Part shown: piece by piece, positions 9,099-46,775 of the stretch | Position numbering within the stretch: the stretch's first letter is position 1 | Layout: each line of letters starts with the position of its first letter | Source of the DNA: Dimorphilus gyrociliatus | Lineage: Eukaryota > Animalia > Annelida | DNA: 46,775 bases | NCBI GenBank assembly: GCA_904063045.1 | Contig: CAJFCJ010000064.1 | Coordinates: forward strand, 50,879-97,653 | Direction: 5' to 3' | Position numbers and translations under genes: made by a program | The notes under the pieces: model-generated | Database searches by the model: none | Told to the model about the DNA's origin: nothing | Seen by the model: the letters and a program-made list of their open reading frames with translations, nothing else

Positions 9099-9141
9099 TA
9101 TAAAATCAGATTATTTTATTTAAAAAATCTTCAAAATATAG

Positions 9142-21701: not shown

Positions 21702-22751
21702 TTAAAAAACCACATCACACAGCTGAACATTAGAAGTTGAATTGAAAATTTGTACAAAAACACTATCGCAAAATTGACTTTTACACTTACAAATAAATTG
21801 ACATTGTGTTTGACTCGACAATTGTATATCACATTTCAAAAATTGGCCTACAAAATTAGTTTCAAATTGAGGTGTTGTTGGAACATAAACAAATAAATTT
21901 TCTTCCCTTTCATCATTACAATTTAGATTTTTTCCTCTAACCTCAACTGAGAATGGTCCCAATGTCTTGTCTACATTTGGAAATGGATATCTGATACCAT
22001 TAGAAAATTCTAAAGATTCTGTACATGTAGAAGAATTTGAATCTGATAAAATGTTAAAAAGTTCTAAATTATCTTGAAAGTGAGGTTTAACTTTCAAAAC
22101 AGATTTTGAACAGGTAACCCTATTTACAGAATTTTTATTAATAGTACATGTTTGTACATGTTTACAAAGACCAGAACTGAGAATAAAATATTCACAATTA
22201 CTATTTTCTCGGCACTTTTGAAGACAAGCAGCAAAATTTTCATTTCCAGTATATAGCGCTGTCTCTGTACATTCGCCTTGTTCACAAGTGGTATAGCCAA
22301 ATCCAAATCTATCATAAGATAGCATATTTGGCATAGCCGAGGGAGCAGCTGTTGTAAAAAAAGAATTACTTTTAGGGAAACAGTATCTTCCAAGATGGGG
22401 AGTCTCTGTCATTGTAAACCCCATGCAATTATGCAATGCTAAGCAGTATTTTGCGCAATCTTCAGGATCTTCTAAATCAGGGGTTGCTACTCCAAGTGAA
22501 TCATAACCGGTCAGCATACCATGTCTATAAGTAAAGCCAGGTATACTTAATTTGGGTCTGTAGCAACCATAACCAGGCTCAAAGCAACAAAAATTTTTAC
22601 TATTACCACTTGTACATTCGTCTAGAGTTATATCATCATTTCCTATACGTATTCGTTCATGAACAACAACATTACATTGATCAGAAATGTTGAATAGACA
22701 GTTAGTCAATTGTAAAATACAAGCAAATGATAAAATTTTATAAAAAATCAT
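21702..22751 (-). CDS. Intronless secreted Cys-rich protein with PAN/apple-like repeats, 349 aa
   Basis: Signal peptide. EDCAKYCLALHNCMGF..YCFPK..SYDR and ACLQKCRENSNCEYF..C fit PAN/apple spacing. The Cys-rich C-terminal domain is unassigned. Confidence 0.7.
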   Translation of the reverse strand: MIFYKILSFACILQLTNCLFNISDQCNVVVHERIRIGNDDITLDECTSGNSKNFCCFEPGYGCYRPKLSIPGFTYRHGMLTGYDSLGVATPDLEDPEDCAKYCLALHNCMGFTMTETPHLGRYCFPKSNSFFTTAAPSAMPNMLSYDRFGFGYTTCEQGECTETALYTGNENFAACLQKCRENSNCEYFILSSGLCKHVQTCTINKNSVNRVTCSKSVLKVKPHFQDNLELFNILSDSNSSTCTESLEFSNGIRYPFPNVDKTLGPFSVEVRGKNLNCNDEREENLFVYVPTTPQFETNFVGQFLKCDIQLSSQTQCQFICKCKSQFCDSVFVQIFNSTSNVQLCDVVF

Positions 22752-23967
22752 CTCAAGCGCAACTTGTTCAAACGGCCAATGATCAATCTATGCGAGAAAT
22801 TCAGGAAATAAAAATATCGGAAAAATCTTAACGATTAATTGATCAATGAGCACTCTTTAATACTCTCTGAATTAAACAAAAAAATTCAATGAATTTTTTG
22901 TCTTTACTCCAGGAAGTAGACATCAATAGCGATTGATTTATATATATTTATTTATAAACTTAGAACAACACTCATCATTATCTGGCAACTGATCAAAAAT
23001 CATAATCAAGCTCTTCTTAGAGTATTGTTTTGTTAATTGAAAAACTTAAAAAATTGAGTTGTTCAAAGATGGAAACTTTTCAGTTGGAGAAAAATTTTTA
23101 AACAAGTTACCTATTCTGAAAGTTTTGAATTTTACTTGACTTTGTGATTTTATTGCTGCAATTTATTTATGACATTTTGTTCACAGGGATGTTCTGTCCA
23201 GGTTATGATTTGTCAAAGGACATTTTGGTAACTAATGTTTTTCACTGTCTCTATTCTTTCATTTTAAAGTGTTATCATCTCCCTCCATCTCCCTCTCTTT
23301 CTATAAATATACCTGCAAAGTTCAAAATAATAGCATATATTTTGTTTAGAAAGATTAATAATGAATCTTTGGATTGAAAATATCTTCAATCAATTTATGA
23401 AAAATTGATAGGGCTTCTTCAGTTCATTTTCTCTTCCTTATTTCTAAAATGTCAGAAATATAAAAGAGCATTCTTTAAACAGGAATACGCAAGGAATATT
23501 AATCACTGAGGTTTTCTTTTTTGGCTCTCTTGTATTGATTTAAACACATTCCCCTGACAAAACATCCCCTGACAGATTGTCTCTTAAGCTAGAAAAGTGA
23601 AACAATTTCTTTATTGTACTAAAAAATGTTACATTGACTTGCTAATCAAATATTAATATAAAAAATGTTTCAAACTTTTTTAAATGTACTTAAGATTAGA
23701 ATTATTTGGTTTGAAAAAAAAAATACTCTTTTACAGGAAGTCTTGTCCCCTTCCTGTTTTTGATATTTGGTAGCCATCTTTTTTTACTACAATGATTATT
23801 CTTGGAGCTTTAACCATTAATTCTGATTTAAAACAACGTGATTTTGATATAGATATTTCATCAAAGACTTTCATACTCCCAAAGTATTTATTTAAAAAAA
23901 GTAAGTTGTTCACTTTATCTTTATTTGACCATTGTGTCATGTCCACTTTCCAATTTTTCATCAGGTG

Positions 23968-24900
23968 ATGGCTCCTTACTGTCAAATTTGTAAATATAGC
24001 CTATTTGAAAGAAAATTCACAAGGAAATGCTCACTCTGCTCTCATCAGTTTAACTTTCAAAGAAAGTGGTCAGAATGATAAAATGACATCAGGAAAATGT
24101 TTGGCTGGCAAGTGTCTCAGTGAAATTCCAAAATCAAATTTTGCTATTCCATTTATTAATAACTGTTGTCCGACTTATTAATAGAACAAGGCAGCAGTTT
24201 AATTCTAAAGGACCAGATGGCTTATACTTCACTCTTGACAAGACTTTTATTCCAGATAATTTTCTGATAAATGATATTTGCAGAGAAAATGAAAGAATAG
24301 TTATATTCTCTACACAAAGTCAAGCCAAATTACTATCTCATAGAAAGATGTGGTTTATGGATGGAATCTTTAAATGTGTTAAGGATGCATTTTATCAGCT
24401 ATTTGTCATTTATGGATTTGTAATAAAGAACAGTGAATTGAAATAAGTTCCTTGGGTCTTTGCATTTATGAGCTCAAAATCAAAGAAAGCATATAAGCTT
24501 TTGTTCAAGGTGAGTAGGGTATTTGGTTAAAAACTATAATTGTAATATTAACAAACCAATGTTGTTTGGAAAACAGGAAATTAAAGCAATAATAGATGGT
24601 CAAACTACTGGCATTACCATTCCTAAAAACTGATGTTATCCCTGCTATCTTTGACATTCTCAGAAACACATCATCTGAGAAAAAATTCCTCAGCAAACTA
24701 ATTGACTATGTGGATAAGCAAAAATTTCTGGAGATTTCTTTGTTAGGTGTACTTGGTCAGTCTACAGAGCAACAATTACAACCAACAATGACTTGGAAGG
24801 TTGATATAATAAGTTGAATAGAAATGTATCTGCTAGAGGCTCACTCCACTTCTCAATAGATGAGTTAAAAAGAGAGCCAAATTTGATTAATCACTAAAAG
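23968..24900 (+). mobile_element. Mutator-like (MULE) transposase 1, left copy: lacks 590 bp covering the PHD end and FLYWCH, retains the decayed DDE region
   Basis: MWFMDGIFK..YQLFVIYGF..VPWVFAFM..AYKLLF, KLLALPFL..LIDYV and TTNNDLEG*YNKLN motifs, with internal stops. Confidence 0.85.
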
Positions 24901-25230
24901 AAACTTTTGAGTGATGGAAAAGTCTGCAGGCTTCAAAAGAAATGTTATGAGAGAATTGAAAGTGATATTTTCAAGTATTGGGATGAATTTAATGTTGCTT
25001 CAATGGCAGCATTACAACTATTGGATAGCATATTTAACATATATTGTTGCTTTTAATTTTACTTTAACTATCCTTCAATTTTTTTTCTATTTAAATAACT
25101 AGCCTTGGCATTTCACTTTTTTTTCAAATATATTTTCTATACTTAAATATTTTTCAAAATCATAAATAATACAGACATTTTTAATTATACTCAAAGAAAG
25201 ATTTGTCCAGCATTCATTATAAAGGATACG

Positions 25231-25423
25231 ACAGAAAATGTCCCCAAATGCATGGTTTAACCCTAACCCTAACCTAGCCCTTGTCTCTCTCTAACCTTTT
25301 TGATTACCCCTAACCCTTAGATGGAACCCTCCTAACTACAAATCAAAAGCTACTTTACTCCTGCTAACCATTTTTCAATCCAAAATCTTGCTTTCAAAAA
25401 TCTCACTTGGGGATGTTTTCTGT
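25231..25423. mobile_element. MITE-like element (~193 bp) containing CCCTAA-like repeats
   Basis: TIRs ACAGAAAATGTCCCCA / TGGGGATGTTTTCTGT (14/16 match), internal AACCCTAACCCTAACC. The right-arm copy (~43558-43633) has lost 117 bp. No TSD identified. Confidence 0.6.
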
Positions 25424-25569
25424 TGGCCCCCATTATAAATGATCAACCAATTTGTTCTGAATGCTTTAATCATCATGCAGATTTGACAACTGATCAGAAA
25501 ATCATAAGTATGTTATGCTTAATTTTCTATTTTCTCCTTTTGCCATAAGATTTCATTCTAAACTTTCAG

Positions 25570-25943
25570 AATGCCCCAGCTTCTGCCAAATACGTTTCCT
25601 GAATGCTGGAACTACTACTTGTTCACAATGCTATAAAAGATATGGTTTGAAATCTGATAAAACTTGTGCACCATGTACACCTTATTATGTTGTTTGTGGT
25701 GCTGATTTGAATGATAATCTACTTTGCTCATCTTGTGATAAGGGAACTGCACTTAACACTATAACTAAGAAATGTGATTCTTGTCCTCAGCCTGTTTTCA
25801 ATGTACTTTAAATTCTCATACCCAAAGGACATTTTGTATCAAATGCCACAATCAATATATAGATGGAACTTGTTTATCATGTCCATTGAACTGTGCTAAA
25901 TGTATAAATGATAATGGAATTGTCAAATGTTCAGAATGCCTTT
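25570..25943 (+). pseudogene. Furin-like / growth-factor-receptor Cys-rich exon fragment, frameshifted and cut off by a family A repeat
   Basis: Repeated CxxC..CxxC (CSQCYKRY..CAPC..CSSCDKG..CDSCP; CLSCPLNCAKC..CSEC). 1-bp frameshift near 25787 is present in both arms. Confidence 0.65.
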
Positions 25944-26040
25944 GTACAATTTTGGTTATATTTTAAGCTTGAACTATAGCACTTTATGCAACTTACACAT
26001 GTATCCCTCAAAACCTATGCAAGAAAATGCTATAACATTG

Positions 26041-26190
26041 CCCAGATAGCACTGATAGAGATAAGCAGACAGTTTTGTGTAGGGCGGTGTATATGCAATG
26101 TGTGGCATTAAATTTCATTAAATTATATACAGAATATTGCTATTAGTAACCTAGCAATAATATTACGGTTTATTAATATTTAAATTTATG
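26041..26190. repeat. Dispersed repeat family D (~150 bp)
   Basis: Shared CTGCTTATCT.TATCAGTGCTATCTG and GCTAGGTT.C.AATAGC. Copies at ~31735-31885, ~42790-42940 and a more diverged one at ~28385-28500. Confidence 0.6.
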
Positions 26191-27957
26191 AATTTAAACT
26201 AAAAGCAGTTCAATTAAATATCTTTTATGCTTCACTTCTAAGTTTACATTTTATTTACTATTCAGCAGTATTGTATGAGTGTGAATGTACCTGAGTGCGA
26301 ATGTACCTTTTTCTTCTTTATTACATTTATGGATTTTTCATAAATTAATTTGGTCAATGATATATAGGTATATATATTAGAAAAGGAAAAAATATTTTGT
26401 AAATGTGAATTATAATATTAAAAACTAAAATGTTGTTGAAAAGTGAGGTGGCAGCCATTTCAAAATTGGAAGAAGTAGAAACAAACTTTCACTTTGGAAG
26501 ACATATATTTACAACTTTTCATTGTCTTGATGAGATGAAACTGGAAGAGTAAGAACCTTCTAGACGAGTATGATTATCTACCACTGATTGATGAAAATAT
26601 GTTGGGTTTGTGTTTTAGCTTTTAAATGGCTACCCAGTATGGTTGACTCACCACAGTTTCATCTTCGACTTTACAAAGACTCATCAGGGTCATTCCAGAG
26701 GATAGCTTCATGTATTGCTTGCTTGAAAGGGCAGGAAATATACAGCTCTGTAATTGTCGACAACCTTGGATTTATATCTTATTATTTTGTTGTTTTGATT
26801 TTCTTGTGTTTCACAGTGGACATGTTTGTAGTTTGAATATTTCAAGACATTTTCTTTAGGATTAGGGTTAGCTATTGTTTGAATTATGTAGACTAAAGAA
26901 AGTAGAATTATATTTGTCTAAGCATTGTAACAATGATTAAATGCCTTTGAGGGAAGAATTAATCTGGAATATTGTCAGTTAGTAATTGACATAGAAACTA
27001 GAAGATACTTGCTTGAATGTGAACACTACTGTATCTTTCTTTAAAACAGTTCAAACACAGGAACATATAGATTTCTTAGGTTTTGTTTAGAAGGTTTCTT
27101 TTTAATGTTGTCTGTGGAAGGTAACTTAGATGGACAACAAAGCACACTGGCCAAATTATGCATTTGCTTTCCTTTCAAAGTAGTATAGTATGAACATAAA
27201 ATGCAATAAAAAATTGAACTGAATTCAAGTGAAAATCTTAATATTTTATTTTCTAATTCAATCAAACAGCAATGAAAAAATTATTTCAGATTAAAAATAT
27301 CAATAATTATGCCCAATACACCTTTAACTAAAACGTTTTTTCTCACACTGAGCATGTTTTTTCCCAACCTGGGATGTTATCCTTAATGTAATTATACAGC
27401 TTTTATAGTTAATACGTAATAGTTAAGTGTAGTTGGCGTTTTGAACAGGTTAATGGCCATTTTCCACAGCTGTACCCACATATAAAAGTACTGAGTTAAG
27501 TCTAGGGTTTTCTAAACAGCATCTATATCTGACTGAAGTGCACATTTGCTAATACCTGTTGACACATGGGAGTTTTTACTTCAACCAGTGCTTTGGCATA
27601 TTATTAAATGAGCAGTACAGATCACTACAATTACAACAAAAAACAATTCCTACAATTCCAACACAACAAACTACAAGAATACATATATTGTAAAAAAAGA
27701 AGTATAGATATAAAAATGTCTTTAAAAGGAGAGAGAAAGCCTTTTTTATTCATTCAATTCCTGTAACAAATGAATGAAAGACTTGTCCTGTAGTTGTTAC
27801 AACTTAGTCATTGAAACCTAATTATAGTAAATTGAAAAAAAGGTTATTCACAGAAAGAAAGGTTCAGTATGAAAAACTTCATACTTTAGCACAGGTGCAA
27901 ATATATCCCTCCCTTCACTCCAAACAATCCACTACTCTCTCAGTCAAATTATCATTT

Positions 27958-28228
27958 AGTATCTGTGTACTTTCCAAATGGTGGTAAAATATATATTTTT
28001 CATGATACAAAAGAAAATATAAGGCTATTTGGTGTATTAAAAGATGATTATTATATGCATGAAATACAATTGTATTTTAATGGACAACTCTTTCCGGTCA
28101 AACTAGATGAGATTATTTGGCAGAATAAGAATGTCATTCAGTGGATTCCTCAATCTCTTCAATTTCAAACAAAATATGGAAAACTTTCTATTAATATAAA
28201 GGATCAATTAGTATACATTTCTCTTTAA
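27958..28228 (+). CDS. Possible terminal exon of an unidentified gene (mirror 40753-41023)
   Basis: 87-codon open frame after an AG in AT-rich DNA, with protein-like composition. No recognisable motif. Confidence 0.3.
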
Positions 28229-28625
28229 TCTGAGTAGTATTGTATCTCTTCTTACCATCTTGTCTGATCTAAACCTAATTCTATTCTTCTGTTCTTTTAA
28301 ATGTTAAAATATGAAAAAAAATATAACTATACTTATACAATTGTAAACTCTTTTCTACAATAGACAAATGGTATGGCATTGGTATTACACTGTGCTGATA
28401 GAGCTAAGCAGTGTTGCCTAGTTGTGACCATATTAAGTATTTGCCCCAATATTTTATTGATTCATATATAAACATTGCTATTTACAATATTAATTGAATA
28501 ATATAGTTCATTAATATATAGATTTAATAATTTGATAGTTCTAGAACTATCTCATTTTACTGGATTTATACAATTATAATGCAGCAAAGGACAAATCTAG
28601 AAAGGATGTGACAGAAAACGTCCAT

Positions 28626-28730
28626 GAAAGAAAACATCCATAAACCGAAAGAAAACATCCATGAACTGAAAGAAAACATCCATAAAGTGAAAGAAAATGT
28701 CTGTAAACTGAAAGAAAACATCCGTGAATC
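28626..28730 (+). repeat. Five tandem 21-bp units GAAAGAAAACATCCRTRAANN, subterminal to MULE 2 (mirror 40251-40355)
   Basis: Direct reading of five head-to-tail units with no spacers. Confidence 0.9.
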
Positions 28731-29125
28731 AAAAGAACACATAAAGTAAAGAAATTTTCATGTAAATATAAATATATGTTGAAAAACAAATTAACACAAA
28801 ACTTTAAAAAAACTGGTAGAGATGAAGAAATCTTCACGAAAAGAGATACAAAATATCAACTTTCTCTTCTATTTTCACTCTCTTCAGGTAATATCAAAAT
28901 TTTTAATTTGTAGAGGTTTTTTTTGATTATTTTATTAGATTATTTTATTACTAATCAATCTAACATAAATTTAGCAATTTTATTTGTAAATGAAGTTTTT
29001 TTTCAATGTTATTGTCAAAATACTAATTGTTACATAAATAATCATAATAATGATATGACAAATTCATTTATTAATTTTAGTTTAGCTCTTCTTTTTCTCC
29101 AATATTTTAGAAAAAATATTGAATA

Positions 29126-30797
29126 ATGGACAAGTGTTCTATTTGCAATGATAAATTTGTTGGTAGGCAAATAAAAGGCCAATGCTCATTGTGTCTGCAT
29201 ATTTGTCATATAAAATGTCTGCATGGTTTGAACTATCCTCTTTTTGAAAAACATTTACTGTTTTTTTTTCTTCCAGATTCATCAACAGCATCACCACTCT
29301 GTTTTATTTGTTATAAAATAACTAAAAAAAACCTGTTTTGTGATGTTAAAGAGAATTGATGAGCCAAAAAAATGCAGGGAAAGTGTACCAATAAAAAGTA
29401 ATTCTACTGCAAAACTTAATGAGAAGGAAGAAGCAATTGTTGAATATCCAGAAAAGAATATTGAGGAGAATAACAGCATGACTGAGGAAAAATTAAAAAT
29501 TGATGAGAAAGGAGACAATAATCAAGGACAAGCAAAGAGTACTGAAGAGTTGACAGAAGAATTGAGATTATCTATATCATGGAGTAGCAATGACAATAAT
29601 GATGAAAGTATAAACACAAAGGTGGACAAAGGAAATATCATTAATGGAAGTGATATTGAATATGATAATGAAATTGAAGTTGAAAATTTTGAAACAATTC
29701 AAAATGCGTATATAGAATCTGAAAAAATTGAGGAAGAATCTTTTGAAAGTGAAACATCTGCCAAAGAAAATTCTTCTGACGATTTTCATTTTAAAATTCT
29801 GCCACATGGAAGTCAAAAAGGCAAAGACTTACTTTTTCACAAAGGTTTTTCATATAATATTAAATTAAAAACAAAAACATCTACTGTATGGACTTGTTCT
29901 GTCAGAAGCAAAAAAAGAAAATGTAAAGCAAGCATCAATCAAAAAGGAAGCAATTTTGCAATTGGGACAAACATTCATTGTCATTCACCAATAAAAAATT
30001 TAGAAACCAGGATTCATATAAGAAATGAAATCAAAGACAATTGTTCTAGTGATATAAATTCTTCAGGTAAAAGAATTGCTGAAAATGTTCTTGTCAAGTA
30101 TTCTAGTACTTCAAACTTACCAAATATAATTAATTGTAAAGAAGTGGCAAATTGGAATAGAAGGAAGAACAGGCCTATTGTCCCCAATGATAAAATATGA
30201 CATTCATTCCTCCTGAATTTTTAAAGAAGGATATAAATATAAATAATGAGAGGATCATTATCTTTGCAACAAATCATCAATTGGAGCTATTGTCAAAGGG
30301 GAAAATTTGGTACCTTGATGGTACTTTTAAGATTGCCAATGAACCTTTCATTCAAATGTACTCTATTCATGTATTTTTGAAAAAAAATGGACAGCTTAAG
30401 CAAGTTCCATTGCTTTTTTCTTTTCTGTCTTCTAAAAAAAAGAGAGCATATAAACTACTTTTCCAGGTAAGAATTACATTTCATAAATATTCTTACTAAT
30501 AAGTAATCATGTTAAATTTTTAAGGCTGTGAAGGATTTAGGTGAAAATTGTGCTCCTAAGAAATTAGTCTTAGACTATGAAAAGGGTGTTTGGAAAACTT
30601 TACAAAATATAGGGCCTGATGTTGTCTTGACGGGATGTTCATTTCATTGGTCTCAGGCAATATTTAGAAAAATTCAGGTTTATTAATTTCTAAAATTTTT
30701 AACAATCCAATTAATATTTGTTTTGTTTAAGGAACTTGGTTATAGCAGAGAATTTAGAAAAAAAGAGGGAGCTTGGGAATCCATGAGAATGATTATG
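29126..30797 (+). mobile_element. MULE transposase 2 (PHD - acidic linker - FLYWCH - DDE), frameshifted and truncated at the IR2 inner junction
   Basis: CSIC..CSLCLHICHIKC..CFIC; SQKGKDLLFHKGFSY..WTC..CKA..HCH; WYLDGTFK..QMYSIH..VPLLFSFL; LDYEKG..GCSFHWSQAI. Frameshifts near 29330 and 30197. Confidence 0.9.
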
Positions 30798-33092
30798 ATT
30801 AATGATTATTAAATTCACAACGAATAGATATTAGCATATAAAGAAAATCTTTAGACCAAAATGTCACAGACTTACTTTTAGACCAACACATGAATGAAAT
30901 ATCAAAAGAATTTTTTTTGAAAGTTATCAAAAGAAATAATTATAGAAGTATACTTTTCAGTTCAAAGCATAAGCTTAAATGATTGGCAATGTGTCAAATA
31001 TGATTCAAATAGGAATATTTGCAATAAATGTACTTTGTTGTATTGTAATTGTAGGAATTTCTGGTTCGTCACAACTGTAATCATCCTTTCCAATCATTTA
31101 CCAACTTGCCAAAGTACTCACACAAATAGAACCTTTAAAGTTCGTCCACAAATAGTCTAACAAAGGCAATTTCGGTAGAAATTAATTAACAAAACACCAG
31201 TATTTCATGCAAAGAATATGTATTGAGTAAAATGAGCTTCTAGTTCTAAACAAGCTAGTTTAAACAACTAAACTGAACTATCAACTGTTAATTTCGTAGG
31301 GTTTATATACTCTTTTAAGGGTTGATAGTTCACAAATTTCAATGTTAACAAAAACAAAAGTAACATTTGAAGACAAAGAAAAGTTGTAAATATGGTCATG
31401 TTTTTATTGTTTTCCTCTTCTAAATAATAGTTGAATTTCGAAGGTTGGAGAGTTGCATAAGATGTAACAATTTTAGTAGGACAAGTCCAACAATGAAGAA
31501 AACATGTAGATTGTATATTTGACCGTTTTTATATTCTACCTTAATAATGATATTCAATTGATTGAGTTAGTAAATTTAGCATCAGCATATGCAGAGGAAG
31601 TATATCTGATTAATGCATGTTAAAAAGAACAGTATTGTGTATACAATACTGTTGAATAGTGAATAAAATCTAAACTTAGAATTTAAGCATAATTGATAAT
31701 TAATTGAACTAGTTTTAGTTCGAAATCATAAATTTATGGATTAATAAATTGTAATATTAATGCTAGGTTGCAAATAGCAAATATTCTTTATATAATTCAA
31801 TAGGTTTTATTACTGCATAATGTGTATGCACTGCCCTATGCGAAACTAGGTCACTACTGCTTATCTTTATCAGTGCTATCTGCATAGTACAATACTGGTT
31901 CAATACTACTTCTCTATTTTAGAATATAGCTGACGAATGTATGTGTACAATAAATATCAAATATAGTCAAAAATTTTTTATAAAAAGTTATGATATTTTC
32001 CAATAACAGAGACTAAATATCTAGAAAAAGAGACAAAATGTCCTTGAAAAAGAGATGAAGTGGCCTGGAAGCTTTTTAGGATATTTTTTTATTAACAAAA
32101 TCGGAACACCACTCATTCAATAAGTGTATGTCAATTTCTGTGGTAGAGACATTGTTTTTATCTAATAACATTTCAACATGTTTCAATATCTTAGAAATGG
32201 AAATGTTAGGGTTAAGGGTTAGAATGGTTTCTACATTGCATGACAGTAATAGGCCTAAAAAAATTTGTTACAATTTAATAAAACAAAAAAGTAATGGATG
32301 ACCGAGCTGACAGTTTTCTCTTTAAAAATTGATTCCCTGTTCCTGTTTGGGTAAAACACCCCAGAAATTTAATATTTTATTAATCTTATGGATAGTCAGT
32401 TTCCCTTGCTTCCAAATGGCTTACTTATTGTTTGGTTCTATTTGGACCAATACTTACCTTCCAAATTATAAATAAATACTTCTGTTGCCAAATCATGGTT
32501 TGCACTCGATATTGACAAGTAATATTTTTTTATAATATTCATAATTTACTGTTGAAATGATCTTTAAATGGATTTCAGAAACATATGATTATTTTCTTTG
32601 GATTTCTCAATCCAAATTTTTGTCTTGAAAAGACCCCCTCAATAGACACCTGTTGTTGAAATTCATTGATTTGTGTGTTTGGAAAAGTTGTAATCATTGA
32701 AAAAATGATTTTTACCTTTATATTATTAGAAAACATTCTCTAAAGAATATGACTACAGAAGAAGAGAAAAATATTCAGAGTAGAAAAATGTCCACCAATG
32801 AAAAATTTGATTGAATATACTAAATGAAGACAAAAAAAATTTCTGAAGCAAATGCCAAAAGAAATAAAACTCTGACACTCTTAAATCAAAAGTAAAAAGA
32901 TACTGAACTCTTGTTAAGCCTATAAATTGAATAACTATTTATATGTAATCAATTAAATGTAAATAGTGTAATCAATAAATAGAGAAATATAAAAACAGAT
33001 TACAGCAACAAAATTTAGCCGAAAGACGGAGAGTTAGATAGAAAAAACTATAAAACTTAATTATTTTATCTAGGAAAGCTGCAATCAAGAAA

Positions 33093-33772
33093 ATGATTTG
33101 GCCTACTGCTACACTAATTGTATCATCATTCATCATCATCATCAGTGGTAAGGAAGTTCTCTTCTTCTACAGATTTCTTAAATATTTTAAGCATGTAATT
33201 TGGTGTTTAGATTGTTCATTGAATCATTGTTGTCGGACTGGTTTCTCTTTAAAAGGGAAAGGCTGCTATAAAATTTTCAATATCTTGTCCACTGGTGATG
33301 AAGCTAAACAATCATGTGAAAGTCAGGGCTATACTCTAGCTGGTTTTTATCTTCAAGAGAATTACGAAGCTGTAATGTCATGGTTTAATTCTGGAGGTGG
33401 TATTTTCTTTTCTTTTGAGTCTAGACTAACTTTCCTTGCAGAGAAATAATGAAATTGATATATTTCCATTCAGCAATTGACAGCAGATGCATATTAAATG
33501 GAGCATATGATCATTCAAAAAACCTTTGGTTCTGGCAAACAAGAATTGGCCCTGTTGAAGTTAACTTTACTTGGGCACATTTCGCTAACAGTGAACCAAA
33601 TGGTGTTAGTTAATCAACCATTTAAAATTTTTTAATTTTCTTCAAGCTTCTTACCTGTTGCAGATTAATCTCCCGCATTATCTTGCTGTTTATAGAAATC
33701 CACATTATGCCGATTATGGACTCGATGATTATGAAAAAACGTCTTCGGCATCATTTTTCCTCTGTGAAGATG
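33093..33772 (+). CDS. Secreted C-type lectin domain protein (at least 4 exons, 3' end not resolved)
   Basis: Exons 33093-33147, 33211-33396, 33474-33602 and 33647-33772 are in phase. CRTGF..GCYK..EAKQSC..GYTLA; GAYD..WFW..W..SEPN; FFLCE. Confidence 0.8.
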
Positions 33773-36097: not shown

Positions 36098-37342
36098 TTA
36101 TTTTCCTGCTTAGTCTTCCTTCCATAAACTGGTAGAGAATTTATTATCATTAATCAATTTACATTATCCTAAGTGGTAAAGTATGGCTGTTATCAATGTT
36201 TATACAGTTTTTAAACATTTCTCTCTTAATGGGAATTATCTGTGTAATACTTCAAAGTGTCTTTGAAGATGACTTTAGGCAATTAAGTATCAGTGACTAA
36301 CTAGATCCAATCTTTTCATTATCACTCAGGGTTAGGTTTTCAATCCTAGCCGTTTTCAACTCGTTCTATTTCCTCTCATTTAATAATTTCTCATAAATTG
36401 AAATCAGATCATCAGCTTCTCTCTTTAAAAGAATGAACAAACAAATAAACAAACTTAGAATGGTAAAGGTAGCATAGCTGTTGTTTACCACACGACAAAC
36501 TATGCTACATTTCAATTAATCATTGAATTACTTTTCAATTCATTTATTTCTTCTTATATGATATTGTTGATTAGTGACAGATGTGTCTTGTAACTTTTCC
36601 TTGCAGATGAATTACTATCATTTATGGCCTTAGCCCTTACCTACTTCACTTTATTTTTTGCCTAAGGGTCTTTTAAGGGTTAGGCCATTAAAAAGAACTT
36701 TTCACTCAATTTCTGAAGGCTGTTAAAATAATTGCAATAAAACAACAACCTCAATTGTTGTAAAGAATATATCTGTCTTTTGTACAGAATGTATGCTACT
36801 ATAAAGACTATTTATTTTATTTATATTTTAAAAATCAATACTTCAGTGTCATCATAGTTTTTGGCTATGTTTATATTTTACTTATTGTTCAAAAGTCTAA
36901 AAAACAATTAAAGAAAATATCTGGAGATAAGAGCTTTAAGAGAAATCTATCAAAATCTCTCATTTCCATTATAATCACAAACTTATTAAGCTGGATAATA
37001 TTTTCAATTTTAGGTTTTCATATCATTATAATAATGATTTTCTCATATTTAAATATTTTTCCAATGCTTTCTAGGCCTATTATTATTTTTAGCAAATTTG
37101 AATAAAAAAAATGACAATTATGTCTTGATTGTTACATTTTTATCAATTAATTCTTTAATTAACCTGTTGGCATTTTTACTAAAAAGTCAATAGCCCTTTT
37201 AGTTTCTAATAGTTTTAAGTAAAATATATTTTTCTATATCATCATTGTAAAAATGGCGACATTTTTATAATTATTATCAACTTTTTTGACAATTTCTTTG
37301 GGGACATTTTCTGTCTGAACCGTATATTCAGAGAAAACAGGG

Positions 37343-37408
37343 GTTGTTGAAAACGCCAACTGTGCCTGTCGAAAACGCCCACTATCCTTGTTGAAAACGC
37401 CCAGTGGT
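37343..37408 (+). repeat. Three 22-bp units containing TGTYGAAAACGCC
   Basis: GAAAACGCC at 37349, 37371 and 37393. A related single motif is at ~27430-27447 / ~41533-41550. Confidence 0.75.
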
Positions 37409-37852
37409 GTTTAAAGACTGTATATAACTAATATTTTTGGTTTTTGATTAAAGAACCTTAATTATAAATATAGTTATAAATTTTTATTCTAAAGATTACT
37501 TATTTTATTTTATTAAACCAGAGATTGTCAAAATGATTGCTAAAACTCATAAATTAAATTCTTTCTATTTATAAAAAAAATTCTTCTTTACCAGTTTTTA
37601 TTTTTTTAAAGATAATCTTTCGCCATCAATAATTCTACTTCCTCTCCAAATATCACAAAGATACAGGTAAGGTCTAATTATTGTTTTTAGATATTTTTTT
37701 GACTAATATGGGTGTACACTTATGAACTATATTTTATAGATATTTTATAAATGATACTTACTATATGGTAGAAGTGTTGAAGTAGATGTTGCCTCCAGGG
37801 TAGATGGTACTGAACTGCTAGAATCAACCCCTTTTATAAGCAAAGGATAAGA

Positions 37853-38209
37853 TGTTACATAACAAACATGTTGACAACAAAAACAAGTGTTTATTTACAT
37901 AAATATGATGTAAGAATTGACTCTTGATGGGTAACCTACACAAAGTTGTTGTTGTTTACATGACTATTGCATAATATGATAACCCTTGACCCTGTTTGTT
38001 ATGAACAATCCTTATCTGGGGTTAGACCCTTGTTGTTGACAACCAAGGCATAAACAACTGATAAGGAATTGTATAAAAGCAGGGCGTAGGCAGTAACAGG
38101 CATTCAGTCCTGAATCAACTCCCTTAGTGAACAGGTCTAGTATTACTTTACAATAAGGTTATATTATTCTTACGGTTTGATTCTATATTCATCCTTCATC
38201 AATTCTACA
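37853..38209 (+). mobile_element. Possible solo LTR
   Basis: TGTT..ACA ends, TATA-like GTATAAAAG (~38071), AATAA near 38152, higher GC than flanks. No TSD found. Confidence 0.3.
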
Positions 38210-38253
38210 TCTCTCTTCTAAGTAGCTGACTCCTGGTTGCGAATATGCAAAGA

Positions 38254-39855
38254 CATAATCATTCTCATGGATTCCCAAGCTTCCCCTTAATAATTAATAA
38301 ACCTGAATTTTTCTAAATCTTGCCTGAGACCAATGAAATGAACATCCAGTTAAGACAGCATCAGGCCCTATATTTTGTAAAGTTTTCCAAACACCCTTTT
38401 CATAGTCAAAGACTAATTTCTTAGGAGCACAATTTTCACCTAAATCCTTCACAGCCTTAAAAATTTAACATGATTACTTATTAGTAAGAATATTTATGAA
38501 ATGTAATTCTTACCTGGAAAAGTAGTTTATATGCTCTCTTTTTTTTAGAAGACAGAAAAGAAAAAAGCAATGGAACTTGCTTAAGCTGTCCATTTTTTTT
38601 CAAAAATACATGAATAGAGTACATTTGAATGAAAGGTTCATTGGCAATCTTAAAAGTACCATCAAGGTACCAAATTTTCCCCTTTGACAATAGCTCCAAT
38701 TGATGATTTGTTGCAAAGATAATGATCCTCTCATTATTTATATTTATATCCTTCTTTAAAAATTCAGGAGGAATGAATGTCATATTTTATCATTGGGGAC
38801 AATAGGCCTGTTCTTCCTTCTATTCCAATTTGCCACTTCTTTACAATTAATTATATTTGGTAAGTTTGAAGTACTAGAATACTTGACAAGAACATTTTCA
38901 GCAATTCTTTTACCTGAAGAATTTATATCACTAGAACAATTGTCTTTGATTTCATTTCTTATATGAATCCTGGTTTCTAAATTTTTTATTGGTGAATGAC
39001 AATGAATGTTTGTCCCAATTGCAAAATTGCTTCCTTTTTGATTGATGCTTGCTTTACATTTTCTTTTTTTGCTTCTGACAGAACAAGTCCATACAGTAGA
39101 TGTTTTTGTTTTTAATTTAATATTATATGAAAAACCTTTGTGAAAAAGTAAGTCTTTGCCTTTTTGACTTCCATGTGGCAGAATTTTAAAATGAAAATCG
39201 TCAGAAGAATTTTCTTTGGCAGATGTTTCACTTTCAAAAGATTCTTCCTCAATTTTTTCAGATTCTATATACGCATTTTGAATTGTTTCAAAATTTTCAA
39301 CTTCAATTTCATTATCATATTCAATATCACTTCCATTAATGATATTTCCTTTGTCAACCTTTGTGTTTATACTTTCATCATTATTGTCATTGCTACTCCA
39401 TGATATAGATAATCTCAATTCTTCTGTCAACTCTTCAGTACTCTTTGCTTGTCCTTGATTATTGTCTCCTTTCTCATCAATTTTTAATTTTTCCTCAGTC
39501 ATGCTGTTATTCTCCTCAATATTCTTTTCTGGATATTCAACAATTGCTTCTTCCTTCTCATTAAGTTTTGCAGTAGAATTACTTTTTATTGGTACAATTT
39601 CCCTGCATTTTTTTTGGCTCATCAATTCTCTTTAACATCACAAAACAGGTTTTTTTTAGTTATTTTATAACAAATAAAACAGAGTGGTGATGCTGTTGAT
39701 GAATCTGGAAGAAAAAAAAACAGTAAATGTTTTTCAAATAGAAGATAGTTCAAACCATGCAGACATTTTATATGACAAATATGCAGACACAATGAGCATT
39801 GGCCTTTTATTTGCCTACCAACAAATTTATCATTGCAAATAGAACACTTGTCCAT
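38254..39855 (-). mobile_element. MULE transposase 2, right-arm copy
   Basis: Mirror of 29126-30797 with substitutions, an extra frameshift near 39610 and a ~78-bp deletion. Confidence 0.9.
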
Positions 39856-42800
39856 TATTCAATATTTTTTCTAAAATATTGGAGAAAAAGAAGAGCTAAA
39901 CTAAAATTAATAAATGAATTTGTCATATCATTATTATGATTATTTATGTAACAATTAGTATTTTGACAATAACATTGAAAAAAAACTTCATTTACAAATA
40001 AAATTGCTAAATTTATGTTAGATTGATTAGTAATAAAATAATCTAATAAAATAATCAAAAAAAACCTCTACAAATTAAAAATTTTGATATTACCTGAAGA
40101 GAGTGAAAATAGAAGAGAAAGTTGATATTTTGTATCTCTTTTCGTGAAGATTTCTTCATCTCTACCAGTTTTTTTAAAGTTTTGTGTTAATTTGTTTTTC
40201 AACATATATTTATATTTACATGAAAATTTCTTTACTTTATGTGTTCTTTTGATTCACGGATGTTTTCTTTCAGTTTACAGACATTTTCTTTCACTTTATG
40301 GATGTTTTCTTTCAGTTCATGGATGTTTTCTTTCGGTTTATGGATGTTTTCTTTCATGGACGTTTTCTGTCACATCCTTTCTAGATTTGTCCTTTGCTGC
40401 ATTATAATTGTATAAATCCAGTAAAATGAGATAGTTCTAGAACTATCAAATTATTAAATCTATATATTAATGAACTATATTATTCAATTAATATTGTAAA
40501 TAGCAATGTTTATATATGAATCAATAAAATATTGGGGCAAATACTTAATATGGTCACAACTAGGCAACACTGCTTAGCTCTATCAGCACAGTGTAATACC
40601 AATGCCATACCATTTGTCTATTGTAGAAAAGAGTTTACAATTGTATAAGTATAGTTATATTTTTTTTCATATTTTAACATTTAAAAGAACAGAAGAATAG
40701 AATTAGGTTTAGATCAGACAAGATGGTAAGAAGAGATACAATACTACTCAGATTAAAGAGAAATGTATACTAATTGATCCTTTATATTAATAGAAAGTTT
40801 TCCATATTTTGTTTGAAATTGAAGAGATTGAGGAATCCACTGAATGACATTCTTATTCTGCCAAATAATCTCATCTAGTTTGACCGGAAAGAGTTGTCCA
40901 TTAAAATACAATTGTATTTCATGCATATAATAATCATCTTTTAATACACCAAATAGCCTTATATTTTCTTTTGTATCATGAAAAATATATATTTTACCAC
41001 CATTTGGAAAGTACACAGATACTAAATGATAATTTGACTGAGAGAGTAGTGGATTGTTTGGAGTGAAGGGAGGGATATATTTGCACCTGTGCTAAAGTAT
41101 GAAGTTTTTCATACTGAACCTTTCTTTCTGTGAATAACCTTTTTTTCAATTTACTATAATTAGGTTTCAATGACTAAGTTGTAACAACTACAGGACAAGT
41201 CTTTCATTCATTTGTTACAGGAATTGAATGAATAAAAAAGGCTTTCTCTCTCCTTTTAAAGACATTTTTATATCTATACTTCTTTTTTTACAATATATGT
41301 ATTCTTGTAGTTTGTTGTGTTGGAATTGTAGGAATTGTTTTTTGTTGTAATTGTAGTGATCTGTACTGCTCATTTAATAATATGCCAAAGCACTGGTTGA
41401 AGTAAAAACTCCCATGTGTCAACAGGTATTAGCAAATGTGCACTTCAGTCAGATATAGATGCTGTTTAGAAAACCCTAGACTTAACTCAGTACTTTTATA
41501 TGTGGGTACAGCTGTGGAAAATGGCCATTAACCTGTTCAAAACGCCAACTACACTTAACTATTACGTATTAACTATAAAAGCTGTATAATTACATTAAGG
41601 ATAACATCCCAGGTTGGGAAAAAACATGCTCAGTGTGAGAAAAAACGTTTTAGTTAAAGGTGTATTGGGCATAATTATTGATATTTTTAATCTGAAATAA
41701 TTTTTTCATTGCTGTTTGATTGAATTAGAAAATAAAATATTAAGATTTTCACTTGAATTCAGTTCAATTTTTTATTGCATTTTATGTTCATACTATACTA
41801 CTTTGAAAGGAAAGCAAATGCATAATTTGGCCAGTGTGCTTTGTTGTCCATCTAAGTTACCTTCCACAGACAACATTAAAAAGAAACCTTCTAAACAAAA
41901 CCTAAGAAATCTATATGTTCCTGTGTTTGAACTGTTTTAAAGAAAGATACAGTAGTGTTCACATTCAAGCAAGTATCTTCTAGTTTCTATGTCAATTACT
42001 AACTGACAATATTCCAGATTAATTCTTCCCTCAAAGGCATTTAATCATTGTTACAATGCTTAGACAAATATAATTCTACTTTCTTTAGTCTACATAATTC
42101 AAACAATAGCTAACCCTAATCCTAAAGAAAATGTCTTGAAATATTCAAACTACAAACATGTCCACTGTGAAACACAAGAAAATCAAAACAACAAAATAAT
42201 AAGATATAAATCCAAGGTTGTCGACAATTACAGAGCTGTATATTTCCTGCCCTTTCAAGCAAGCAATACATGAAGCTATCCTCTGGAATGACCCTGATGA
42301 GTCTTTGTAAAGTCGAAGATGAAACTGTGGTGAGTCAACCATACTGGGTAGCCATTTAAAAGCTAAAACACAAACCCAACATATTTTCATCAATCAGTGG
42401 TAGATAATCATACTCGTCTAGAAGGTTCTTACTCTTCCAGTTTCATCTCATCAAGACAATGAAAAGTTGTAAATATATGTCTTCCAAAGTGAAAGTTTGT
42501 TTCTACTTCTTCCAATTTTGAAATGGCTGCCACCTCACTTTTCAACAACATTTTAGTTTTTAATATTATAATTCACATTTACAAAATATTTTTTCCTTTT
42601 CTAATATATATACCTATATATCATTGACCAAATTAATTTATGAAAAATCCATAAATGTAATAAAGAAGAAAAAGGTACATTCGCACTCAGGTACATTCAC
42701 ACTCATACAATACTGCTGAATAGTAAATAAAATGTAAACTTAGAAGTGAAGCATAAAAGATATTTAATTGAACTGCTTTTAGTTTAAATTCATAAATTTA

Positions 42801-43037
42801 AATATTAATAAACCGTAATATTATTGCTAGGTTACTAATAGCAATATTCTGTATATAATTTAATGAAATTTAATGCCACACATTGCATATACACCGCCCT
42901 ACACAAAACTGTCTGCTTATCTCTATCAGTGCTATCTGGGCAATGTTATAGCATTTTCTTGCATAGGTTTTGAGGGATACATGTGTAAGTTGCATAAAGT
43001 GCTATAGTTCAAGCTTAAAATATAACCAAAATTGTAC

Positions 43038-43411
43038 AAAGGCATTCTGAACATTTGACAATTCCATTATCATTTATACATTTAGCACAGTTCAATGGAC
43101 ATGATAAACAAGTTCCATCTATATATTGATTGTGGCATTTGATACAAAATGTCCTTTGGGTATGAGAATTTAAAGTACATTGAAAACAGGCTGAGGACAA
43201 GAATCACATTTCTTAGTTATAGTGTTAAGTGCAGTTCCCTTATCACAAGATGAGCAAAGTAGATTATCATTCAAATCAGCACCACAAACAACATAATAAG
43301 GTGTACATGGTGCACAAGTTTTATCAGATTTCAAACCATATCTTTTATAGCATTGTGAACAAGTAGTAGTTCCAGCATTCAGGAAACGTATTTGGCAGAA
43401 GCTGGGGCATT
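43038..43411 (-). pseudogene. Mirror copy of the Cys-rich fragment
   Basis: Identical translations for the ORF pairs 25515/43170 and 25781/43015. Confidence 0.65.
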
Positions 43412-43856
43412 CTGAAAGTTTAGAATGAAATCTTATGGCAAAAGGAGAAAATAGAAAATTAAGCATAACATACTTATGATTTTCTGATCAGTTGTCAAAT
43501 CTGCATGATGATTAAAGCATTCAGAACAAATTGGTTGATCATTTATAATGGGGGCCAACAGAAAAAAGGTTAGAGAGAGACAAGGGCTAGGTTAGGGTTA
43601 GGGTTAAACCATGCATTTGGGGACGTTTTCTGTCGTATCCTTTATAATGAATGCTGGACAAATCTTTCTTTGAGTATAATTAAAAATGTCTGTATTATTT
43701 ATGATTTTGAAAAATATTTAAGTATAGAAAATATATTTGAAAAAAAAGTGAAATGCCAAGGCTAGTTATTTAAATAGAAAAAAAAATTGAAGGATAGTTA
43801 AAGTAAAATTAAAAGCAACAATATATGTTGCAAGAGTAAGAACCTTCTAGACGATA

Positions 43857-44838
43857 CATAAACCACATCTTTCCATGAGATAGTAATTTGGCTTGACTTT
43901 GTGTAGAGAATATAACTATTCTTTCATTTTCTCTGCAAATATCATTTATCAGAAAATTATCTGGAATAAAAGTCTTGTCAAGAGTGAAGTATAAGCCATC
44001 TGGTCCTTTAGAATTAAACTGCTGCCTTGTTCTATTAATAAGTCGGACAACAGTTATTAATAAATGGAATAGCAAAATTTGATTTTGGAATTTCACTGAG
44101 ACACTTGCCAGCCAAACATTTTCCTGATGTCATTTTATCATTCTGACCACTTTCTTTTAATTTGTGTCTAATTCTTATTTCTATTTCCAGGTTATTATTT
44201 CTCTCATGAATATGATTCATTTTGCCAAGGATAAAAGAATTATCTCTTTGGGAAACTCTTGCAGGACACTTCATGGATATGTTTCTGATACTACATGTCC
44301 ATTTAACTGTGTTTCCAGTCTTTTCTTTTACAGAAAAACAGTATCCTTCATGCAAAAGGAGATTTTTTCCTTTTTGATTCATTCCTTCCAATGTTGTGAA
44401 TGCAGGGTCCATTTCATCTTTTTCTTGAATATTTGAGTTATAAAAAGATTTTTCAATTAAATTATCTTGAGAGGCATTTGCTGAATGGTTTCCATTATTC
44501 CTATGATCACATAATTCTTGTTCCTTCCCTACACTTTCATCTTTTCCATTTTTTTCTCCAGTAAAAGAGTTATCTTCAAGAAAAGTATGTCTGGAACAGG
44601 TACTTCTTTTTAATGAGACAAAACAATTCTTTTTGAAGACATCAGTGCAGGTAGAGCATAAATATACATCAGACACTGCAAATATATAGAAATAAATAGG
44701 AATGATAAAATAATAAATGCGAATATTACTTGAAATGCATTTTTTATGAAAGTTAAACTGATGAGAGCAGAGTGAGCATTTCCTTGTGAATTTTCTTTCA
44801 AATATTCTATATTTACAAATTTGACAGTAAGGAGCCAT
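43857..44838 (-). mobile_element. MULE transposase 1, right copy: retains PHD and FLYWCH, lacks most of the DDE region
   Basis: CQIC..CSLC..FHKKC..CSTC (PHD-like) and NQKGKNLLLHEGYCF..WTC..CPA..HIH (FLYWCH). Breaks just before the first catalytic Asp. Confidence 0.85.
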
Positions 44839-46052
44839 CACCTGATGAAAAATTGGAAAGTGGACATGACACAATGGTCAAATAAAGATAAAGTGAACAA
44901 CTTACTTTTTTTAAATAAATACTTTGGGAGTATGAAAGTCTTTGATGAAATATCTATATCAAAATCACGTTGTTTTAAATCAGAATTAATGGTTAAAGCT
45001 CCAAGAATAATCATTGTAGTAAAAAAAGATGGCTACCAAATATCAAAAACAGGAAGGGGACAAGACTTCCTGTAAAAGAGTATTTTTTTTTTCAAACCAA
45101 ATAATTCTAATCTTAAGTACATTTAAAAAAGTTTGAAACATTTTTTTATATTAATATTTGATTAGCAAGTCAATGTAACATTTTTTAGTACAATAAAGAA
45201 ATTGTTTCACTTTTCTAGCTTAAGAGACAATCTGTCAGGGGATGTTTTGTCAGGGGAATGTGTTTAAATCAATACAAGAGAGCCAAAAAGAAAACCTCAG
45301 TGATTAATATTCCTTGCGTATTCCTGTTTAAAGAATGCTCTTTTATATTTCTGACATTTTAGAAATAAGGAAGAGAAATGAACTGAAGAAGCCCTATCAA
45401 TTTTTCATAAATTGATTGAAGATATTTTCAATCCAAAGATTCATTATTAATCTTTCTAAACAAAATATATGCTATTATTTTGAACTTTGCAGGTATATTT
45501 ATAGAAAGAGAGGGAGATGGAGGGAGATGATAACACTTTAAAATGAAAGAATAGAGACAGTGAAAAACATTAGTTACCAAAATGTCCTTTGACAAATCAT
45601 AACCTGGACAGAAATCCCTGTGAACAAAATGTCATAAATAAATTGCAGCAATAAAATCACAAAGTCAAGTAAAATTCAAAACTTTCAGAATAGGTAACTT
45701 GTTTAAAAATTTTTTCTCCAACTGAAAAGTTCCATCTTTGAACAACTCAATTTTTTAAGTTTTTCAATTAACAAAACAATACTCTAAGAAGAGCTTGATT
45801 ATGATTTTTGATCAGTTGCCAGATAATGATGAGTGTTGTTCTAAGTTTATAAATAAATATATATAAATCAATCGCTATTGATGTCTACTTCCTGGAGTAA
45901 AGACAAAAAATTCATTGAATTTTTTTGTTTAATTCAGAGAGTATTAAAGAGTGCTCATTGATCAATTAATCGTTAAGATTTTTCCGATATTTTTATTTCC
46001 TGAATTTCTCGCATAGATTGATCATTGGCCGTTTGAACAAGTTGCGCTTGAG

Positions 46053-46775
46053 ATGATTTTTTATAAAATTTTATCATTTGCTTGTATTTTACAATTGACT
46101 AACTGTCTATTCAACATTTCTGATCAATGTAATGTTGTTGTTCATGAACGAATACGTAATAGGAAATGATGATATAACTCTAGACGAATGTACAAGTGGT
46201 AATAGTAAAAATTTTTGTTGCTTTGAGCCTGGTTATGGTTGCTACAGACCCAAATTAAGTATACCTGGCTTTACTTATAGACATGGTATGCTGACCGGTT
46301 ATGATTCACTTGGAGTAGCAACCCCTGATTTAGAAGATCCTGAAGATTGCGCAAAATACTGCTTAGCATTGCATAATTGCATGGGGTTTACAATGACAGA
46401 GACTCCCCATCTTGGAAGATACTGTTTCCCTAAAAGTAATTCTTTTTTTACAACAGCTGCTCCCTCGGCTATGCCAAATATGCTATCTTATGATAGATTT
46501 GGATTTGGCTATACCACTTGTGAACAAGGCGAATGTACAGAGACAGCGCTATATACTGGAAATGAAAATTTTGCTGGCTTGTCTTCAAAAGTGCCGAGAA
46601 AATAGTAATTGTGAATATTTTATTCTCAGTTCTGGTCTTTGTAAACATGTACAAACATGTACTATTAATAAAATTCTGTAAATAGGGTTACCTGTTCAAA
46701 TCTGTTTTGAAAGTTAAACCTCACTTTCAAGATAATTTAGAACTTTTTAACATTTTATCAGATTCAAATTCTTCT
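46053..46775 (+). pseudogene. Mirror copy of the PAN/apple-like gene, partial in the window, with several 1-bp indels
   Basis: Reverse complement of 22751-22029 with an extra A at ~46158, an extra G at ~46577 and missing As near 46670 and 46696. Confidence 0.7.

Follow-up and report, generated by a model that had tools for sequence, protein, structure and literature searches.

A window of 46,775 nucleotides from the annelid Dimorphilus gyrociliatus, consisting of one 46.8-kb contig bounded by two N runs, contains a large inverted repeat, IR2, whose arms match each other in opposite orientation at very high identity, beyond chance. The explanation that we favor, with moderate confidence, is that IR2 is a true inverted segmental duplication in an island of transposons and gene-family sequence, later scarred by error-prone end joining. 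The term "palindrome" applies to IR2 as it stands in the assembly and not to a chromosome, and IR2 is a local structural feature, whether real or an artefact.

Structure and contents of IR2

The following features of IR2 were located in the window:

22029–30797, forward strand: left arm of IR2, 8,769 bp, from self-alignment
38254–46775, reverse strand: right arm of IR2, the inverted copy, 8,522 bp, from self-alignment
30798–38253: asymmetric spacer between the arms, 7,456 bp
21702–22751, reverse strand: PAN-domain ORF (weak match), 349 aa, extending across the left arm's outer end
25515–25966, forward strand: fragment of a host gene family, with an open frame shortened identically in both arms
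28603–30797, forward strand: left copy of a 3′-truncated Mutator-like element, "Z", with terminal repeat, FLYWCH finger and the start of a putative MULE domain
38238–40378, reverse strand: right copy of the truncated Mutator-like element, 16 nt longer than the left, followed by a 526-bp high-copy repeat
35174–36097, reverse strand: 7TM-receptor-like gene in the spacer, an intact intronless ORF of 307 aa
About 31021–31960 and 37713–38238: high-copy repeats in the spacer
32808–34547: spacer segment with a 91% paralogue on another scaffold

Self-alignment reproduced the inverted repeat of the preliminary description, which had given arms of about 8.5–8.8 kb and a spacer of 7.46 kb. The overall length reported there, at least 24.7 kb, is correct as stated, and the "at least" is owed solely to the 3,200-N run that begins at the window end (46775) and cuts the right arm off, making the arm extent a lower bound at the outer side. 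Both junctions between arm and spacer, at 30797/30798 on the left and 38237/38238 on the right, lie in gap-free, continuous polished sequence with no N, and these two inner junctions are 16 nt apart and differ, so that they are not one junction seen twice. When the sequence beyond the right-hand gap was compared with the left flank of IR2 (left of 22029), the two were unrelated, with a MITE match only, which fits a right arm that has its own neighbor. A second palindrome with a different spacer, IR1, directly adjoins IR2 on the same contig; its arms differ by 1-base indels only, and a 916-bp direct repeat beside it was rejected as an LTR pair for want of TG...CA ends.

Each arm is a mosaic of the PAN-domain ORF, a FLYWCH element, a MITE, the gene fragment and the 3′-truncated Mutator-like element, with at least four unrelated repeat families patched together with low-copy DNA. 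The full-length arm occurs exactly twice in the genome, no third copy or haplotig of it remaining in the assembly, while its component pieces are dispersed repeats, and IR2 is therefore taken as a block duplication rather than as two insertions of one element.

The Mutator-like family has at least 12 copies at ~97% identity, including a full-length copy of ~3.2 kb on the same scaffold, in which the 5′ subterminal region is matched in inverted orientation at the far end (98 nt, 87% identical), as in a terminal inverted repeat. The FLYWCH domain of the element scores above its Pfam cut-off; PF10551, the MULE domain, is matched in the arm copy and the full copy with E = 3e-4 to 5e-4 and 21 bits, short of the 27.6-bit cut-off. 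MULEs have been reported in D. gyrociliatus in the genome paper (PMC7854359). Arms that end at a transposon terminus, as in a transposase-mediated rearrangement, were considered and rejected, given that the full-length copy extends ~0.9 kb beyond the arm ends and that the arms break off within the element at sites separated by 16 nt.

The right-arm copy of the PAN-domain ORF (46132–46605) is shortened by 1-base indels, and an exact database look-up of nine ORFs found two proteins, the left and right copies of this ORF, from this scaffold only. Intact members of the gene family represented at 25515–25966 cluster on another scaffold. A Pfam search with ten short arm ORFs gave nothing useful. The spacer ORF of 307 aa had no Pfam match; hydropathy gave seven hydrophobic segments, its language-model neighbors were rhodopsin-type 7TM clusters (score 0.98), and at least 35 intact paralogues are present in the genome. 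Another reading, in which the whole spacer is a single LTR retrotransposon flanked by pieces of the 526-bp repeat, gained no support: the long ORF is encoded on the opposite strand and is a member of a host family that numbers at least 35.

Shared lesions and later divergence of the arms

For the shared lesions, the arms were set against five further copies of this transposon family. An extra A at 29324 and a loss of 13 bp at 30193/30194 occur in both arms and in none of the five further copies (0/5 in each case). Around 25787, both arms have an open frame of 105 aa as compared to 258–321 aa in paralogous genes; this lesion is common to both arms by definition because it is sited in the identical core. 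The preliminary description had listed shared lesions near 25787, 29330 and 30197, and the latter two are borne out by their absence from the other copies, while the one at 25787 was checked only in part. In all, ~45 derived changes, including the two frameshifting lesions, are common to both Mutator-like arm copies and extend up to 30647, as compared to 5 private derived changes in the left copy and 8 in the right, which makes the two copies sisters. The possibility that the right arm's inner end is an independent family copy, used as a switch point by a replication fork or by the assembler, was rejected, as the shared derived sites up to 30647 interleave with private ones.

The arms have since diverged mainly at the following positions, listed with a long tract that is identical in both:

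44158–44747, reverse strand: deletion A, 590 bp of the right arm that the left arm has lost at 24058/24059
24364–25035, forward strand: deletion B, 672 bp of the left arm that the right arm has lost
43830–43854, reverse strand: right-arm filler where the ends of deletion B meet, 25 nt
25299–25415, forward strand: deletion C, 117 bp missing from the right arm, with its junction at 43565/43566
30692–30762, forward strand: deletion D, 71 bp missing from the right arm close to its inner end, with its junction at 38289/38290
25416–29237, with partner 43565–39744: tract identical in both arms, 3,822 bp

The earlier count of one left-arm and three right-arm losses is upheld, A having occurred in the left arm and B, C and D in the right, as polarised by outgroup transposon copies. 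Deletion A lies inside a FLYWCH-encoding element (ORF 44035–44874, FLYWCH E = 2.8e-10); a copy on another scaffold is contiguous through the segment, and other copies have ~570–590 bp there. For deletion B, family copies are contiguous with the left arm, and the segment of deletion D is present in all outgroup copies. Deletion C falls inside a high-copy MITE-like repeat of ~210 bp (about 25216–25432), with 3 nt of microhomology at the junction. At the deletion-B junction, 23 of the 25 filler nucleotides are an exact inverted copy of 42414–42436 (chance ~1e-8), the same 23-mer also being a direct copy of 26545–26567 in the left arm, and the junction has in addition 2 extra bases and a base change 3 nt away. 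The polarised deletions, the templated insert and the arm-private substitutions agree with the earlier statement that deletions with filler are not typical sequencing errors.

Apart from these losses, the arms differ by substitutions at 18 positions in 7,909 aligned bp (0.23%), each of them private to one arm or the other. Alleles could also have diverged by 0.23%, which counts against a true duplication. The changes are clustered, with 14 of the 18 no more than 120 bp from the edge of a deletion (P = 3e-10), and a tally of polarisations places 10 of the 13 polarised substitutions on the deletion-bearing arm. A substitution-free tract of 3.9 kb exceeds chance (P ~ 1e-4), for which the crowding of changes around the deletions accounts as well as arm-to-arm gene conversion would. 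The long identical tracts suggest a recent origin or arm-to-arm gene conversion. Since the split, 1,450 bp were lost in four deletions and 25 bp gained, as compared to 18 base changes, which amounts, in this small sample, to a loss of ~80 bp for every substitution.

The arms also differ by twelve 1-base indels of homopolymer type, and 10 of the 12, at 22104–23659, lie in the outer 1.6 kb of the arms; in the outer 2 kb, 1-base indels are the only arm differences, and the last 2.7 kb of the right arm resembles draft-quality consensus. These twelve indels are probably consensus errors. The earlier reading of the arm differences as mutations stands for the four deletions and the 18 substitutions and probably not for the homopolymer indels. 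Because the deletions and substitutions are real mutations, the arms represent distinct molecules or loci; together with the ~45 shared derived changes, the polarised deletions and private substitutions support the proposal that the arms diverged after the shared lesions.

Origin of the inverted arms

Under a true duplication, a block of at least 8.8 kb, already decayed and with a Mutator-like element that already carried its two frameshifting lesions, would have been copied in reverse orientation ~7.5 kb away. One new illegitimate junction would have arisen at 30797/30798, and the other junction, which retains 16 more Mutator-like bases, would be the older one. Each copy would then have gained its own double-strand-break scars, four deletions of 71–672 bp, one of them with a templated insert, and a few substitutions mostly beside the deletions and mostly on the deletion-bearing arm. 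IR2 would be, in effect, a by-product of rearrangement in unconstrained DNA.

The main competing explanation, to which we give appreciably less weight, is an assembly artefact in which each chromosome carries a single arm, and the two arms are haplotypes, or variants within the worm pool, that were joined in inverted orientation via the spacer. The preliminary description had rightly raised this caveat of alleles wrongly joined in inverted orientation. The join could have happened if the 7.5-kb spacer is inverted between haplotypes. The assembly was made with DNA from pooled females sequenced on PacBio RS II and with PBcR, HaploMerger2 and SSPACE-LongRead (PMC7854359), and two haplotypes could thus have been present in an assembly that went through PBcR, a haploidisation step and long-read scaffolding. 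The window is also a single 46.8-kb contig between N runs, its right arm ends at a gap and has many homopolymer errors, the assembly retains no third copy or haplotig, and the differences between the arms are what alleles in unconstrained DNA could show. There is also a precedent in Adineta vaga, in which palindromes of the 2013 draft were afterwards put down to mistakes in scaffolding the phased haplotypes (PMC8494291). IR2 resembles that draft in having near-identical inverted blocks from pooled animals of a small invertebrate, and its arm differences could be allelic. However, the inverted join at a scaffolding gap that marks the Adineta vaga type is absent from IR2, in which the arm–spacer junctions are gap-free and within a long-read contig, and the N run is touched solely by the right arm's outer end, unlike in a mis-join of the AV13 type. 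An artefact would require, beyond mis-walking by the assembler, an extra event, a spacer inversion polymorphism whose breakpoints in the Mutator-like element are separated by 16 nt, and it must be reconciled with the continuous, polished sequence at both inner junctions, with a second palindrome of different spacer directly alongside on the same contig, and with the scaffolder's link at the outer end of the right arm, which leads to DNA that has no relation to the left flank.

Two other explanations are very improbable. In a fold-back chimera, from a missed PacBio hairpin adapter or a library snap-back, both arms would be one molecule read twice; the use of PacBio RS II data is in keeping with this, as is the restriction of differences to 1-base indels in the outer 2 kb of IR2 and in all of IR1, but such a chimera is expected to have no spacer or a tiny one, as compared to 7,456 bp of non-palindromic, gene-containing sequence, and it is contradicted by the four polarised deletions, the templated insert and the 18 arm-private substitutions. 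Two opposite insertions of one mobile element of at least 8.8 kb are about as hard to credit. The inner 2.2 kb of each arm does come from a Mutator-like family with at least 12 copies, but the whole arm, with exactly two copies, combines low-copy DNA with at least four repeat families that are unrelated to one another, and the arms end ~0.9 kb short of the Mutator-like terminus and at two different points. No terminal repeats or target-site duplications were found at the inner arm ends, the outer ends being hidden by the gap.

Related systems and significance

Primate X and Y ampliconic palindromes are large, near-identical inverted segmental duplications. Like them, IR2 has inverted kilobase-scale arms, >99.7% identical, around a unique spacer, with the gene of IR2 lying in the spacer, and its long identical tracts are compatible with the arm-to-arm gene conversion of such palindromes. 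In contrast to the intact amplified genes of the primate palindromes, the IR2 arms hold dead transposons and pseudogene fragments and have diverged by large deletions. The host also differs, being an annelid with a 78-Mb genome, and in IR2 the linkage of the arms is that of the assembly and gene conversion is putative.

Deletion B has the makings of a templated-insertion scar of alternative end joining, of the polymerase-theta or fold-back type (PMC7165422, PMC11724301, PMC11292364), which likewise combines a deletion with an inverted insert copied from nearby, extra bases and a base change. We class it as a scar of this kind, with the putative enzyme read from the scar itself. In such scars the template lies within tens of bases, whereas the template of deletion B is 1.4 kb off or in the other arm.

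IR2 further shares with the Mu killer type of silencer an inverted duplication of the terminal repeat and 5′ part of a transposase gene, and the truncated Mutator-like copies of IR2 face each other and belong to a family with live-looking copies of ~97% identity, one of them full length on the scaffold. Unlike Mu killer of maize, IR2 has a 7.5-kb spacer and 6.5 kb of co-duplicated unrelated DNA, and it resides in an animal. If IR2 is real and transcribed across its center, the facing truncated copies (28603–30797 and 40378–38238) might give rise to a long hairpin RNA and so supply small RNAs that silence the young Mutator-like family, an animal counterpart of Mu killer, although by analogy this is a long shot.

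If IR2 is an artefact, haplotypes have been joined in inverted orientation on small scaffolds of this reference that are rich in repeats, and gene-family counts and surveys of structural features on such scaffolds would be affected. If it is real, IR2 preserves, in natural DNA, a scar of end joining in which a templated inverted insert is accompanied by clustered base changes close by, and it provides two sister sequences, dated and unconstrained, from a genome that is studied for its compaction. The deletion bias between these sisters is striking, though the sample is small, and makes such deletion a candidate driver of DNA loss in this 78-Mb genome.

Layout and assembly context of IR2

The genome sequence of Dimorphilus gyrociliatus analysed here comprises 77.9 Mb in 349 pieces; the published assembly (~78 Mb, ~350 scaffolds) was built from PacBio RS II reads of pooled adult females with PBcR, polished with Quiver and Pilon, and then processed with HaploMerger2 and SSPACE-LongRead (PMC7854359). 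Three N runs interrupt the scaffold of interest, C64, and because the window (C64:50879-97653, G+C ~29%) is exactly the stretch flanked by the first two, it is probably a single 46.8-kb contig of a long-read-scaffolded piece.

N runs on scaffold C64 (scaffold coordinates)
47445-50878, 3,434 bases, left of the window
97654-100853, 3,200 bases, right of the window
162423-166035, 3,613 bases

The preliminary description of IR2 as a large palindrome was reproduced, with 22029-30797 pairing with 46775-38254 across a 7,456-bp spacer. The right arm ends where the 3,200-base N run begins, and DNA beyond this gap gave no match to the sequence left of 22029 except for one small repeat, so the outer boundary of IR2 is hidden. 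At the inner ends, both arms carry a 3′-truncated copy of a Mutator-like element that stops ~0.9 kb before the true terminus of the family. The left copy adjoins low-copy DNA, and the right copy extends 16 nt further before meeting a 526-bp high-copy repeat; the inner boundaries are two distinct illegitimate junctions. The right junction may be ancestral, in which case 30797|30798 would have been created by the duplication. The left arm-spacer junction lies where 7-9-nt motifs are repeated over a short stretch (30785-30815), with an identical 9-mer on either side of the join, a possible footprint of microhomology or slippage in the junction-making event.

The spacer is asymmetric and contains an intact intronless reading frame with seven hydrophobic segments.

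Spacer feature
35174-36097, (-), 307-aa ORF

This ORF had no Pfam match, and its language-model neighbours are rhodopsin-type receptors. It is probably unannotated, since its exact sequence was absent from the protein collection. Intact paralogues without introns number at least 35 (24-63% identity); they are scattered on small scaffolds of the genome and seem to represent a 7TM receptor family expanded in this lineage.

Immediately left of IR2 lies a second palindrome, IR1 (arms 3719-11259 and 12907-20444), whose arms differ by no mismatches and nine gap openings. The spacer of IR1 opens with 916 bp (11261-12176) that exactly repeat, in direct orientation, the segment 1407-2322, 9.85 kb upstream; this segment lacks LTR-type TG...CA ends. 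Either IR1 is very young or one locus has been assembled twice.

Composition of the arms

Both IR2 arms are mosaics of the same seven parts.

Parts of each IR2 arm, outermost to innermost (left-arm coordinates where given)
Part 1, low-copy DNA with PAN-domain ORF
Part 2, ~23550-24602, FLYWCH-encoding element
Part 3, second repeat
Part 4, ~25216-25432, ~210-bp high-copy MITE-like repeat
Part 5, 25515-25811, (+), host gene-family fragment
Part 6, additional repeat pieces
Part 7, 28603-30797, Mutator-like element copy, 2.2 kb

Pfam gave no name for the gene family of part 5. Its intact members, with open frames of 258-321 aa, are clustered in tandem on scaffold C12 at ~2.446-2.480 Mb. High-copy dispersed repeats occupy ~31021-31960 (~940 bp), 37713-38238 (526 bp) and 25216-25432 (~210 bp); dozens of copies of each exist, and their 93-98% identity suggests recent bursts.

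The Mutator-like family numbers at least 12 copies (~97% identity), and an inverted terminal match is present in a ~3.2-kb copy on the same scaffold. In Pfam, the FLYWCH finger of the element clears the cut-off, and its MULE-domain match falls short of it. When the arm copies were compared with five outgroup copies, they were found to have ~45 derived changes in common, and only 5 and 8 private ones. The proposal that the arms share older frameshifts held for this element, in which the shared changes of both copies include +A at 29324 and loss of 13 bp at 30193/30194 relative to the five outgroups. At a constant rate of change, the duplication would be recent relative to the insertion of the element.

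Differences between the arms

Twelve of the arm differences are one-base length changes, nearly all in homopolymers. Ten fall within 22104-23659, a region with no substitutions, compared with two such indels and 18 substitutions in the inner 6.8 kb (Fisher P=2e-6). Four lie in the 349-aa PAN-domain ORF, and all four leave the left copy intact and the right copy broken.

PAN-domain ORFs (weak matches)
21702-22751, (-), left arm, 349 aa
46132-46605, (+), right arm, 157 aa

We infer that these single-base indels are unpolished long-read consensus errors close to the contig end, not mutations, and the 157-aa ORF has probably been cut short by homopolymer errors of this kind. Both ORFs are deposited as database proteins found only on this scaffold, and exact sequence look-ups returned only proteins of this same assembly.

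The remaining differences are real mutations, as had been proposed, with copies of the repeat families running uninterrupted across all four deletions. Same-family copies on other scaffolds are contiguous across the 590 bp absent from the left arm (deletion A), and the 672, 117 and 71 bp absent from the right arm (deletions B, C and D) are present in family copies. The filler DNA reported at a deletion was also recovered, as 25 nt at the 672-bp junction (43830-43854). Of this filler, 23 nt reproduce 42414-42436 exactly in inverted orientation (chance ~1e-8); that source is in the same arm at a distance of 1.4 kb, and the insert can equally be described as copied directly from the left arm. Three nucleotides from this junction a base has changed, and the scar as a whole is of the type described for templated-insertion end joining (PMC7165422, PMC11724301, PMC11292364). 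At the junction of the 117-bp deletion there are 3 nt of microhomology.

Substitutions are derived at eight positions in the left arm and nine in the right, with one unpolarised. Fourteen of the 18 are found no more than 120 bp from a deletion edge, where 12% would be expected (P=3e-10), and by tally 10 of the 13 polarised near-deletion substitutions are on the arm carrying the deletion. The longest tract without substitutions, 3.9 kb, exceeds chance (P ~1e-4).

Origin of IR2 and its mutation spectrum

Inverted duplications that are large and diverged are already known from repeat-rich DNA. Judged from its sequence, IR2 is rather more probably than not a true inverted duplication. This reading needs just one rearrangement and agrees with inner junctions free of gaps, with the presence of IR1 next to IR2 and with a right-hand flank unrelated to the left one. 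Given the structural differences between the arms, a read-level fold-back chimera is ruled out. The complete arm occurs only twice in the genome, which argues for duplication of a block and not for two insertions of one element, a candidate also ruled out by the mosaic make-up of the arms. Two haplotypes of one locus could instead have been joined in reverse, as was published for the Adineta vaga draft (PMC8494291), but this would require both a spacer inverted between haplotypes and an assembler crossing from one to the other, and we consider it unlikely, though a serious candidate.

The analysis gave no pointer to a function for the IR2 structure; that it might serve as a hairpin source against the Mutator-like family, on the model of Mu killer (PMC3440606), seems very improbable. 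For 18 substitutions between the arms, losses total 1,450 bp and gains 25 bp, and this strongly deletion-biased spectrum of sister copies bears on how the compact genome of D. gyrociliatus loses DNA.
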